This document shows, one piece after another, positions 42,113 through 47,154 of a DNA stretch of 64,000 nt. This DNA is from Vitrella brassicaformis CCMP3155 (lineage: Eukaryota; Protista; Chromerida). The notes beneath the pieces are model-generated. The model was not told where the DNA came from. It saw nothing but the letters and a program-made list of their open reading frames with translations, and did no database searches. The stretch is taken from assembly GCA_001179505.1 (NCBI GenBank), contig CDMY01000255.1, positions 62,001 through 126,000 of the forward strand, in the 5' to 3' direction. Position 1 is the first letter of the stretch; the number at the start of each line of letters is the position of its first letter. The position numbers were made by a program, and so were the translations under genes.

Positions 42113-44435
42113 ATGGCTCAAGATCCGTGGCGCACATACCCCCAGCCCTACGGCTCTGCAGTTCCTGCCTCCATGCCACCTCCCGATACTGCAGGCAGAT
42201 TCTTCGCCTCATCCATGCATCCACACACGCTGGGACACACGCGGGGGCTTTGGTTGTGTTGTGTGGCTTTTGCAGGGACGGACTCAGCTCACGGCAGCAC
42301 CATGGGCAAGCGCCACTATGGGGTCGGCACGTACACGAGCGGCATGATTCACAAGGGGCTCGAGACGGCAAACACCCGCCAGAATCTCCAGAACTACTTC
42401 GGAAAGGGCAAGAGGCAGGTTCCGTATCATCTGGCCGCGGGGCAGGTGGACACGACGAGAGTGCTGCCCGTGGAGCGCCCCAAGGGCCATGAGCAGCCCT
42501 TCCTCGGCAGCCAGAATGTGCAGTGGACGCTCACAACACCCGACAATACGTGCACCAGGCAGAAGACCATCGCTAAGTTTGACGAGCGCAAGTACGAGCA
42601 GGCCACCAAGAAGCATCCACGATGCCCCTACCCTCCCTACAACGTGAGCTATCCCTGCATTGCAAGAAAGCCACTTCTTCCCCTTTTCCTCCCATCAGGT
42701 GGTCCCTGCTGGCGCCGATTTCACGACGACTGCTCACAAGCTGCATGCCAGCATCGCCCCCAAGGCCAACTGGGCATTGAGTGCAACCGGCGAGCCGCGA
42801 GAGGTGCGGCCTCCCTTGGACCCCGTCGCACAGGGGGAGGAGACCCGCGTGACGTTCAAGGACGACAAGTGCAGCAATAGCCCCCACGGCAACGAGAAGG
42901 CCATGGGCATGACAGGCTACATGGACCCCGCCACGATGAAGCGACAGCGCGGGCCAGAAATGGAGAACACTAACACCATGTCCGGCTACCCTTCTGTCCC
43001 TGCTGGCATGTACGGCTACCGTGATCAGGTCCTCCGCATGCAGGACACTCGGGTATGTAACCGACGGGCGGCAGGTTCTTCTCTTCCCTGCGTGTCGATT
43101 GATCGATTCTTGCGTGAATCAGGTTGGCGACACGATGCGCCGCCCCAGCGGCTGTCCGCCCCAGCTGGAGTTCAAGGACACCAAGCAGGACCTCGGCACC
43201 ATGGAGCAGCTCGGCTACACGCTCCCGCCAGACACACAGATGCACTACCACCAGCACGCCCCTCGTTACGACCAGACGCCCCAGCGGCCTGGCTATGGCA
43301 CTGGCGGCCGCGGCTTCCCGGCAGGCATGTACGGATTTCGCGAGAAGATCTACACCGCCCAAGACACAAATGTGCGTGAGTGATACAGGGCATGGAAACG
43401 GGGAGACATACCATACACGGATTTCCCTTCCTTGTGTCGTGTCAGGTTGGCAATTGTATGTACCATCGCGGCCCTTCGGAGCCTCTCGATCACCACCAGC
43501 ACCACCATGAGCATCATCACCATCAGCAGAACCATCAGCAACAGCCGTATGTCCACCCTGTCCAGGAGACCCACCATGAGCACCACCACGAGCACCAGCA
43601 CCAGCACCAGCATCTCCATCCCCAGGAGACCGCCGTCATGCAGACCATCCATGAGCATCAAGAGGCCCCGCCTGCCGTCGAGACGGCCACAGGCACAGGG
43701 GGTGGCTACGCCTCCATCGGCCAGGCCAACAACATCAAGACCAACCAGCTGCCTCCCCGCCCCCAGACAGCCATCGGCACCGAGTACAAGCACCATCCCG
43801 GCATGGCCCCCGCGGGCATCGCGATTCACTCCGGCCACACGAAGGACTTCATCGCGCCGTCGGCCCACGTGATCAAGGGCTTCAACCGCTTCAACACCAG
43901 AGACAGCATGATGGGCTACTTTGGCCGCGGCAAACGGGGCGGCGACCCGATGGAGTGCTACATGCCGGAGGTGGTGCACATCCCCGACTACCCGCCCGGA
44001 GAATGGAAGCCCGTGGAAGCACCCAGCAAGGAAAACGCATACCGATTCAGGGCAAGGCAGAGACACAAAGATGCAGGCGAAGAGACACCTGCGAATGATG
44101 TGTTCCTTTTGTCTCACTCTCAGCCTGCCGGCATCGTTGCTCGTCGCGACAACATCGATGAGTGCATCCGCCCTACCGTCGGCCTTCATGCAGGTCAGCC
44201 AGCCCCCTGTGCTCTCCTTGGTGTCTTACGTGCATGTCTCATGATTGAATCCATTGCAGGCAGCATCACCCAGACGTCTCCCTATGCGTATGCGTCCATC
44301 CACGGCGACCCGTCTTGGGGCCAGAACAAGCAGAGCGGCAAGGCACGGACCACTGGGTACGGCGGCTGTGCGGGCCTTGCAAGCATGCCCATGCCTCCTG
44401 AGGCCGCACAGGGACGACCCCCTCAGGACGACTGA
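42113..44435 (+). CDS. hypothetical repetitive protein with a His/Gln-rich tract
   Basis: Multi-exon GC3-rich coding sequence with repeated motifs (PAGMYG[YF]R...QDT; YFG[KR]GKR) and the tract HHQHHHEHHHHQQNHQQQ...HHEHHHEHQHQHQHLH. Confidence 0.8.
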
Positions 44436-44927
44436 AGAGGCATACGCAGACAGGAAGCAGACGTAGTATAGATGATTACAGTAGTGGGTTTTGTACCCGT
44501 GTTGTGTCGCGCATGCTGGCTGCCGAAATGAGGCGCTGGCTCGGTTATTACTCGTCAACAGAGTAGATAGCACACACAGACCTGCTGGCAAAGACCGGCG
44601 AGTAGTTTTGGTGCAGTGGGAAGGAGAGACAGCAACTTCACTATCGGACGGACTGACAGGAACGCATTCATCATCATTAAACCGATTCAATAGAGATGTC
44701 TGTCTGTTCCTGTGCCATGTGCCAGCGTCTGGCCGGCACTGTGCTGATTGACGGATGGTCCCATACACAGACAAATACCCACAAATCACATACCAAACAC
44801 GCCAAGACGTCCCAATCCCGACCCATCAATCACAATCACCTCACGAAGAAAGAACTACAAACTCGCTGCACTCATCCCGCTATGCCTGCACGCCTCCCAG
44901 CCAGTGGCAACTGAACCTGCCGCTGTC

Positions 44928-45006
44928 ACTTTTCGCTCTGCCCTCCCTATCAGCCGCACCACTGCCTCGGGTGTTTTCAGCCGACAAGTCATTCGCGAGC
45001 AAAAGT
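44928..45006 (-). promoter_or_regulatory. type II SECIS element in the 3' UTR of the deiodinase-like gene
   Basis: Minus strand: helix I ACUUUU-GCUC/GAGC(G)AAAAGU, then core AUGA, helix II CUUGUCGGCUG/CGGCUGAUAGG (11 bp including G-U pairs), apical AAAA with mini-stem CACC/GGUG, and the 3' GA of the core (GGAG). Confidence 0.9.
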
Positions 45007-45067
45007 CGTACAGCACAAGGGCCAAGCTGCCACTGGCGACGTCTCCACCTCCCTCCCCAATGGTAGG

Positions 45068-46236
45068 CTAGTTGTCTTTCTCTCCCTCCCCCTTGCCAGC
45101 TTGCTGTTCAGCATCAGTTTCCTCGGTCACGGGCTCCCCGAAGCGGCGCTGCAGGAAGCGACGGAGCTCCATCGGATCGTAGAACTGATACACACACACA
45201 CACACAGACGGGGAGGATATTGCAAGTGTGTGTAGGTGGATGGGTGTGGTGCGATCCTTGGCTCACCCATGGTCCGATGCCGCCCTGGTAGGTGATGATG
45301 CCCTGCTCGACCACGTAGAGGCGCAGTGGCGACGCCTCGTAGGCACGCACCACCTCATTAGATATCTCGTCAACTGACCAACCAACCAGGCATACACATG
45401 GGCACACAGAAAAGACATGCACATCATCCGCGGCCTCACCTGCCGTGGCCGAGTCGCCCACAGCGTTCCACAGCTCCTCTGAGTCGAGAGGCACCTCGCC
45501 GTCGTGCTGGCAATCTGCACTGCCGCCCCCAGCCACCGATGCCTTGTTGGTCACCTGGCCGGCCATCTCAGGATGCACTCGGTACCGGTCAGTGAAGATG
45601 CGGGCGAGCTTGAGGCGGTCGCACATCGCCGTGGGCTGGCTGAAGTGGATGTTGTCGCGGTAGTTCTCGGCAGACGGCCACCCTGGCTCGGGGAAGACCT
45701 CCCTCACGTAGATGAAGACATAACGAACCCGCCCACAGAACTCCTGGGTCACGATCTCCATGACCTGAATGGACACAACATGACAAACACATGTGCATGT
45801 GTGTCAGCGACGTGTGTGTGGCTGAGCACCGGTCCCCAGGCTCGGCTTGGTGGTCAGGTGACACTTCCGAAGTTGAGGACCACGGGCATGGCCGTATCAA
45901 AGAAGGCCGACAGGTTGGTCAGGCGGCCATCCTGCAGCCGCACAGGGCCGTCGGGCGCCGGCAGCCCCACCTGAATCTTGGACATGAAGCCATCCTCCAG
46001 CTGCGGAAAGACCGCATGCAAAATCTCCTGAGTCACCTGCCGAGTACACACACGCAGAAACGCACACAAAGCAATGATCACAGAGGTGCCTTGCGGTCGC
46101 CTCCTTGTCATCCCGTCCTTACTCCTTCTGTTTGGCCCATCTCCTGGGCTTTTTCGAGTGCTATGACATCTCGCTCCGGCAGATTCTTGGCATTGAGGCG
46201 GTGAACCGCCACCGGGGAGTCGCTCTCAGACGACAT
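45068..46236 (-). CDS. iodothyronine deiodinase-like selenoprotein (289 aa, Sec at codon 99, TGA 45854-45856)
   Basis: Exons 46123-46236, 45830-46036, 45440-45764, 45267-45373 and 45068-45184, all GT-AG and phase-compatible. Motifs: PVVLNFGSVT-U-PP, RYVFIYVREVFPEPGW, VDEISNEVVRAYEASPLRLYVVEQGIITYQGGIGPWFYDPMELRRFL. A SECIS follows downstream. Confidence 0.92.
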
Positions 46237-46579
46237 TGCCCCACCTTTCTCGAGCGCCTGCGAGCTCAGCTGCAAACTCAGAGCGCAGAGCGATTTGGTG
46301 CTGCCCCGATCCTTCCGCTCTGAGTCATCCCCCTATGTGCTGGCGCGATTCAGCCAGGGAAATCATCCATCCGCTACATCTGAGCAGCTCCGCAGTTCAG
46401 TAGCCAGAGTGCCATCCAAGGACCGTTGACCGCATCACACAGGTAGAGCGGAACGGAGAAGGAAGGCCATCGCCAGAAACTGACGATTGATTCATGGAAT
46501 TCCCTGCGCAGATGTGTGTGACGTGGCTTCGGAGCTGGAAATATCATGGCCGTGGAGTAAGTGGCCGTGGAGCAAGAGC

Positions 46580-47154
46580 ATGACGACGGAGGTGAGCCTT
46601 TCCGGCAGTGCTGTGGACAGATTATCCATCTGCAGCTCTCGTTTGTTGCTCTTCTCCTCAGGATTCGCCTGTTGTCACTCTCACGGCCATACGCGCCCGT
46701 GTAGCTGCCCTTCAGGAACAGCTGGAGGAGCTCCATCGCAAGGTGGCCACAAGCAATGAGTGCACTGTGCATTAGAGGCTCTTCAATTTCTGCGCTTGTG
46801 TTGAGCTCGTCAGGTGAAGCGTGTGCTTGCGCTGAAGAGTGTGATCGAACACTCGTTCCAGACGGACGGCAGCCGCCTACAGGTGAGAGAGCCGCACCAA
46901 ATGAGGCACACAGACAAGATGAACACTTACACATCGATTCTTGGCTCTGCTGTCAGGATGTCCGCGCCCATTATGCGGGCCTTAGCGAGGCACTCACGAA
47001 GATTGCAAATGGCGACAGACGCGAGAGCGAGGTTCTTTCTCTCGTCCGTCAAGCGTTCACCCAATGCGACGCGATATCTGCCATCTCATGGGCACCGGTA
47101 TACAGACTCGCAAGACACTGCGCGGGGCAGCTTCATCCTGACACTTTTTGTCTC

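Follow-up and report, generated by a model that had tools for sequence, protein, structure and literature searches.

How might a gene come to yield a full-length protein when its reading frame meets a TGA at the very codon that specifies the catalytic residue in its relatives? This question is raised by a deiodinase-like gene on the minus strand of a 64-kb stretch of DNA (the window, to which all coordinates refer) from the coral-associated alga Vitrella brassicaformis CCMP3155. An earlier note on this DNA, made from the letters alone, had suspected a hidden selenoprotein from a probable chromerid, and exact look-up of the transcript's open reading frames (ORFs) bears out the origin, returning Vitrella brassicaformis CCMP3155 with the lineage Alveolata; Colpodellida; Vitrellaceae. 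We propose, with a probability of roughly 0.88, that the locus is an expressed nuclear gene for a soluble 289-residue protein of the T4_deiodinase family (PF00837), and that UGA codon 99 is read as selenocysteine (Sec) by means of a type II selenocysteine insertion sequence (SECIS) in the 3' untranslated region (UTR). The main result of the analysis is that this finding corrects the public gene model, CEL97501.1.

The transcript evidence places the TGA within the mature message. Five exons, joined by GT..AG introns of 86, 65, 66 and 82 nt, concatenate to 870 nt, that is, 289 codons and a terminal TAG, and codon 99 is the sole internal TGA. Exon 2 runs through PVVLNFGSVT into the TGA at 45856-45854 and continues with PPSRAWGP. 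In four public runs, the assembled RNA contigs map to the window as exactly these five exon pieces with zero differing letters. Three of the four exon junctions are reported directly by the contigs; the fourth (45184/45267), implied by both the record coordinates and the transcript, is absent from the junction table because an adjoining (TG)n repeat, a microsatellite at 45190-45210 within intron 4, was skipped in contig mapping. The contigs assemble at word depth up to 258, and since the depth at the flanks (44381-44623) is zero and the introns are skipped, they represent transcripts and not contaminating DNA. A poly(A)-tailed transcript of 1302 nt (L001) is identical to the spliced coding sequence over its positions 29-898, and no further ATG occurs in its positions 1-28, upstream of the ATG at 46236. 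Its 3' UTR matches the genome through 44671 and then gives way to A's, and the remaining contigs end at 44702-44705. Because both L001 and the RNA contigs match the model, we conclude that the TGA is kept in the mature mRNA and that the UTR runs past the SECIS-like hairpin described below.

The same conclusion holds at the level of the genome. Four further runs, from two samples and two studies, yielded unspliced contigs of DNA type, and these match the locus without a single difference, which indicates that the TGA is not an assembly error, with the proviso that some of these runs may be the source of the assembly. Downstream of the TGA, 190 codons follow without a stop over three further splice junctions, an outcome with a chance probability of ~0.009. 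These results agree with the earlier note in every structural respect: the TGA at 45854-45856 does directly follow PVVLNFGSVT, and the five phase-compatible GT-AG exons that the note had spliced into a 289-aa read-through protein are exactly those seen in the RNA contigs and in L001. Three of the ways in which the note had said that its proposal might fail could be checked, namely removal of the TGA by splicing, a 3' UTR ending before 45006 and a TGA that is itself an error; instead, the TGA is retained in the RNA contigs of all four runs, the UTR extends to about 44671, beyond the SECIS, and no variant letter is found in either RNA or DNA contigs.

Sequence and fold both assign the protein to the deiodinase family, which is a thioredoxin-fold family related to peroxiredoxins. 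PF00837 is matched with 78.6 bits by the public protein (P0003) and with 60.7 bits by P0001, against a cut-off of 27. The match is made up of separate but collinear segments lying on both sides of the TGA, with profile positions 54-113 in exon 2, 128-198 in exon 3 and 188-222 in exon 4. Significant sequence matches in the PDB are limited to mouse Dio3 (4TR3, E 5.8e-11) and Dio2 (9H48). An AlphaFold2 model (mean predicted local distance difference test, pLDDT, 75.6; predicted template modelling score, pTM, 0.73) leads to the same two structures: Foldseek ranks Dio2 (9H48) first in the PDB (E 1.7e-10, template modelling score 0.77 by target) and Dio3 (4TR3) second (1e-9), and the next matches, thioredoxin-like and peroxiredoxin proteins, follow at E 3e-6, about four orders of magnitude behind. 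Family membership, as claimed in the earlier note, is thus well supported, and the RLY...G.I.Y motif that the note had seen at the C-terminus is indeed common to the Vitrella protein and Dio1-3.

The position of the TGA within this family supports our proposal. An exhaustive HMMER search with the 181-aa C-terminal ORF returned 407 homologues, none of them above ~41% identity, and column counts were taken from an alignment of the Vitrella protein with the 148 best of these (149 sequences); about 110 positions are alignable across the homologues, and almost no match carries a taxon label. In this alignment the UGA falls on the Cys of FGSxTCPPF, and in the Dio3 crystal chain it falls on the residue changed from Sec to Cys, which is to say that it lies exactly in the catalytic Sec/Cys column, where the earlier note had put it. 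Among the 148 best homologues, this column holds Cys (FGSxT-C) in 34 and Trp in 4, and a further 87 begin just past it, as gene calls cut at a TGA would. Most family entries in databases therefore look truncated at a Sec codon, which would bias any survey of the family.

One homologue makes the point concretely. The top-scoring DIO-domain relative (P0005) comes from a locus in bacterial assembly GCA_041630155.1 (L004:1165-1887) at which adjacent ORFs of 105 and 128 aa are separated by an in-frame TGA; reading through it gives ...FGSYT-TGA-PPFR...EAHPDDEW, preceded by an N-terminal hydrophobic segment. When scored against a profile of 20 full-length Cys-type homologues, the Vitrella read-through protein (with X at the UGA) reaches 148.7 bits versus 126.2 for the public model, and it aligns to this profile gaplessly from FGS to GW. 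The spacing from U to GW is 37 residues, checked against both the Dio3 chain and the 20-homologue profile, so that the gapless alignment to a deiodinase that the earlier note had reported for the stretch after the TGA stands on both comparisons. Among other homologues (P0064, P0090 and P0077), some have EF-hand domains fused to the deiodinase domain, and some also score above threshold for AhpC-TSA (peroxiredoxin).

Decoding of UGA as Sec in a eukaryotic message would be directed by a SECIS, and a hairpin of this type lies in the transcribed 3' UTR, ~650 nt downstream of the UGA. In its minimum free energy (MFE) fold, AUGA and GA face each other across an internal loop, on the 5' and the 3' strand respectively; beyond the loop come helix II, of 11 bp, four unpaired A's and a mini-stem of 4-5 bp. 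In genomic coordinates, helix I is followed by ATGA (44992-44989), by helix II (44988-44978, paired with 44956-44946), by AAAA (44977-44974) and the mini-stem, and, after the 3' strand, by GA (44945-44944). A hairpin answering to the complete type II SECIS that the earlier note had reported about 76 nt past the TAG is present with all the defining features, its ATGA beginning 75 nt past the stop codon. We scanned both strands of the window (128 kb in all) for a pattern made up of helix I, [AG]TGA and a helix II of 9-13 bp (one mismatch allowed) that is followed without a gap by AA and, past its 3' strand, by GA; this locus was the sole match. In 100 first-order Markov simulations of the window, 0.10 loci per 128 kb fit the pattern, which corresponds to ~3e-4 expected by chance on the correct strand of the 397-nt UTR.

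Automated annotation has handled this gene in the ways that the earlier note had predicted, both by truncation and by splitting. The public NCBI model CEL97501.1 (UniProt A0A0G4EJL4), a 278-aa 'unnamed protein product' that clusters with the transcript's ORFs, reads ...NFGS-VMEIV...; it joins a GT donor at 45862-45861 to the true acceptor and thereby loses 11 residues, including the one encoded by UGA. The resulting gap coincides with the T-C-PPFMARMSA segment of the Dio3 crystal chain. The model lacks a catalytic residue because the predictor picked a donor that avoids the UGA; RNA contigs from the four runs use the 45829 donor only, and the donor of CEL97501.1 occurs in none of them. The MMETSP/JGI gene callers instead break the mRNA into two ORFs, one of 98 aa closed by the TGA and one of 181 aa opening at the next Met.

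Several observations weigh against our proposal, and one of these concerns the active site itself. After strand beta-2, the family carries the near-invariant motif E-A-H-P-x-D-G-W, for which Vitrella has E-V-F-P-E-P-G-W, so that a near-invariant His and a near-invariant Asp are both replaced. The His column of the 149 aligned sequences holds H in 134, F in one (Vitrella), N in one and gaps in 13, that is, His in 134 of the 136 sequences that cover it; the Asp column holds D in 122 and P in one, again Vitrella. The roles assigned to this His in the vertebrate enzymes (Dio3 His202, Dio2 His162) are membership of a proton relay, alongside Ser, Thr, Tyr, Glu and a second His, and contact with the substrate phenol or stacking on the conserved Trp (PMC11592359). 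Of the active-site network, the Vitrella protein retains Ser, Thr, Tyr, Glu and Trp. At the second His (Dio3 His219) it has Pro, the usual residue in microbial homologues; Pro occurs there in 106 of the 149 sequences and His in 22. From its sequence, the protein could be catalytically degenerate or changed. The replacement of the His and Asp of EAHPxDGW makes substrate handling of the vertebrate iodothyronine-deiodinase type unlikely, and we therefore place the gene in the PF00837 family, and not as an iodothyronine deiodinase in the functional sense. The combination of His-to-Phe and Asp-to-Pro with an intact Sec codon makes a modest tool for asking what deiodinase-like proteins outside animals do.

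The remaining points against concern the hairpin and the structural model. A search of 141 nt with Rfam RF00031 (SECIS_1) gave 15.3 bits (gathering score 35; E 1.7), a sub-threshold match, although its alignment spans the full length of the model and sets AUGA, AAA and GA at their proper positions, and an Rfam search of 2.4 kb with E up to 10 returned no match to a SECIS family. The folding energy of the hairpin is unexceptional (z -1.57). The AlphaFold2 model was built on the public 278-aa sequence, which lacks the 11 active-site residues. Finally, conservation or covariation of the SECIS would call for an orthologue, and none was found in the protein word search or in metagenome contigs. In the word-indexed protein collection, a 166-aa query (exon 3, in-frame intron 3 and exon 4) recovered only the gene's own transcript ORF, with no close orthologue (~50% identity or more) from, for example, Chromera; a search of metagenome contigs for loci related to P0001 returned nothing.

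Could the TGA nonetheless be a true stop, with a 98-residue N-terminal fragment as the only product and the downstream exons a decaying, pseudogene-like remnant? TGA normally is a stop, the gene callers applied to the transcripts treat it so, and the divergence of the His/Asp motif downstream would fit with decay. A decaying remnant, however, would hardly be expected to keep 190 codons open over three additional introns, all in the correct phase, to match PF00837 collinearly, to model as a confident deiodinase core, and to be followed by a SECIS-like hairpin in the UTR of an mRNA with word depth up to 258; in addition, homologues carry TGA or Cys in the same column. We regard this explanation as very improbable. 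The public gene model is, if anything, more improbable still. It would require that the relevant mRNA use the 45862 donor and encode a 278-residue protein with neither Sec nor Cys. This GT is in phase with the same acceptor and was chosen by the NCBI annotation, but every RNA contig of the four runs uses the 45829 donor (although rare isoforms can escape contigs), and the deletion removes the catalytic residue together with the start of helix alpha-1, at a cost of 22 bits against the family profile.

A subtler alternative accepts that the UGA is read but assigns the reading to a near-cognate tRNA (Trp, Cys or Arg) instead of tRNA-Sec, and the hairpin would then be incidental. The UGA is followed by C, which is a leaky stop context, and the sub-threshold Rfam score can be counted on the same side. 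Yet such read-through usually reaches no more than a few per cent, a poor yield for an enzyme, and the hairpin has every defining feature of a SECIS at the correct spacing and is the sole such site in 128 kb. Sec forms also dominate the family, accounting for 80% of algal DIO members (PMC7539508). We consider near-cognate decoding about as improbable as a true stop, and UGA codon 99 is, on the sequence evidence, most likely decoded as Sec.

Decoding as Sec leads to a plausible route from message to chemistry. SBP2 and eEFSec would bring Sec-tRNA to codon 99 under the direction of the 3' UTR SECIS, and Sec99 would occupy the position that is catalytic in all deiodinases, within the motif FGSVT-U-PP, where helix alpha-1 begins. 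The Sec99 selenolate would then be expected to attack an electrophilic atom of the substrate. In the deiodinase manner this atom would be a halogen borne by an aromatic ring; in the manner of peroxiredoxin-like enzymes it would be oxygen or sulfur. Thiols would then reduce the Se-X or Se-OH intermediate, as in the peroxiredoxin-like cycle that has been proposed for deiodinases.

Which of these reactions the protein might perform is far less certain than its identity. Because the His is missing, we lean slightly towards redox chemistry on a non-halogen substrate over reductive dehalogenation: the protein has about an even chance of being a thiol-dependent oxidoreductase of that kind, whereas a reductive dehalogenase of some halogenated aromatic compound is a tentative second choice, and some other chemistry is improbable. 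The role in halogenated-phenolic or iodine metabolism raised in the earlier note is speculative; if the absence of the conserved His has any bearing, it speaks against substrate handling of the vertebrate type. It is also conceivable, although we find it doubtful, that Vitrella has expanded its deiodinase-fold selenoenzymes and that this gene is a neofunctionalised paralogue among them, one that kept Sec, Ser, Thr, Tyr, Glu and Trp, replaced its His and Asp, gained a disordered loop of ~40 residues and is soluble. If such a paralogue were active, it would amount to a natural experiment on the role of that His in deiodinase chemistry, and it could mark a new class of substrate, for example reef-derived halogenated or oxidised metabolites.

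The features of the locus are collected in Table 1.

Table 1. Features of the Vitrella deiodinase-like gene and its transcript, in window coordinates and in the order of transcription.
Feature	Positions	Strand	Remarks
5' UTR	46237..46270	-	transcript 5' ends at 46244-46270 (RNA contig ends, four runs)
Exon 1, coding part	46123..46236	-	ATG 46236-46234; 38 codons
Exon 2	45830..46036	-	69 codons; ends ...NFGSVT-U-PPSRAWGP; RNA contig pieces 45828/30-46034/36, four runs
GT donor of public model CEL97501.1	45861..45862	-	in no RNA contig
In-frame TGA, predicted Sec codon 99	45854..45856	-	no variants in RNA or DNA contigs
Exon 3	45440..45764	-	EVFPEPGW motif, alpha-2 helix and most of the ~40-residue Vitrella-specific insertion
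Exon 4	45267..45373	-	...PLRLYVVEQGIITYQGGIGPW; RNA contigs, Dio3 alignment
Exon 5, coding part	45068..45184	-	includes TAG 45070-45068
3' UTR	44671..45067	-	397 nt, then poly(A) in transcript L001
Type II SECIS-like hairpin	~44921..45015	-	core 44992-44944; MFE fold

Intron 3 (45374-45439), at 66 nt, keeps the frame and has no stop codon, and as a result a mechanical ORF (45114-45776) runs straight through it and gains 22 spurious residues. On the opposite strand, a spliced transcript begins at ~46265, with introns at 46440-46508 and 46590-46659 (window 46244-46700). This plus-strand gene and the deiodinase-like one diverge from 5' ends that abut or overlap, a head-to-head arrangement implying that a bidirectional promoter, with no spacer, serves both. 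No tRNA was found within the 64-kb window.

Two further properties of the protein bear on how it differs from its relatives. It has no hydrophobic segment that could serve as a membrane anchor: hydropathy on the Kyte-Doolittle scale peaks at 1.16 (19-residue window) within strand beta-1, and the maximum over the N-terminal 78 residues is 0.55. It also carries an insertion of ~40 residues (about 170-213) that is disordered in the model, with low pLDDT. Part of this insertion (VHPEMAGQVTNKASVAGGGSADCQHDG..., window 45440-45600, residues ~170-200) matches 11 repeats of a 2077-aa protein (P0004), with a common motif, VTPxxAGxVTNxASVAGGGD, and 16/33 identities per repeat. The resemblance is short and compositionally simple and is probably due to chance.

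The gene can be compared with several known systems. Among algae, DIO counts as one of 42 selenoprotein families and has Sec in 80% of its members; within the alveolates, selenoprotein genes number 26-29 in Symbiodinium and up to four in Plasmodium (Jiang et al., 2020, PMC7539508), a phylogenetic bracket that favours Sec decoding in Vitrella. The text of that paper has no mention of the chromerids Vitrella and Chromera, and PMC5028923 lists one alveolate tRNA-Sec conserved element without saying whether Vitrella has it. Our literature search found no paper linking Vitrella with selenoproteins and no published account of chromerid selenoproteins; the only paper combining 'Chromera velia' with 'selenoprotein' is a chloroplast-proteome survey.

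The vertebrate enzymes Dio1-3 (4TR3, 9H48) have the same fold, the same FGSxT-U-PP motif at the start of alpha-1, the same 37-residue spacing from U to GW, the C-terminal RLY...G.I.Y.GG.GP motif and a type II SECIS in the 3' UTR. Identity to them is only ~20-24%, however, and the Vitrella protein differs in having no N-terminal transmembrane anchor, in its ~40-residue predicted disordered insertion and in coming from an organism with no known thyroid hormone. Relative to Dio3, it has Phe at the equivalent of His202, Pro at the Asp of HPxDGW and Pro at the equivalent of His219.

The bacterial homologues are closer by score. Deiodinase-like Sec proteins and Cys homologues have been described from marine bacteria (Zhang et al., 2005, PMC1088965), in which thyroid hormones would not be expected; for this reason the function proposed for them is a redox one. 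They include the highest-scoring DIO-domain relatives of the Vitrella protein (35-41% identity over conserved blocks), they have the microbial-type QP in place of QH, as does Vitrella, and they carry Sec or Cys in the same column. On the other hand, their SECIS lies inside the coding sequence, a signal or membrane segment is often present (as at the bacterial locus described above), and they have the canonical EAHPxDxW motif that Vitrella lacks.

The most direct precedent is Dictyostelium discoideum, likewise a protist without thyroid hormone, in which a Sec-containing PF00837 homologue with a type II SECIS was reported and called unexpected (Lobanov et al., 2007, PMC2375036); PMC6592521, where it cites the work, credits a dio3 phenotype in this organism to Singh et al. 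(2014). The Dictyostelium protein is 37-39% identical to animal deiodinases, whereas the Vitrella protein is far more divergent and has lost the conserved His. Deiodinase-like selenoproteins in the absence of thyroid hormone are thus already known from bacteria (2005), Dictyostelium (2007) and algae (2020), and to these the Vitrella locus, with its predicted Sec, adds a documented selenoprotein gene for the chromerids, the photosynthetic relatives of apicomplexan parasites.

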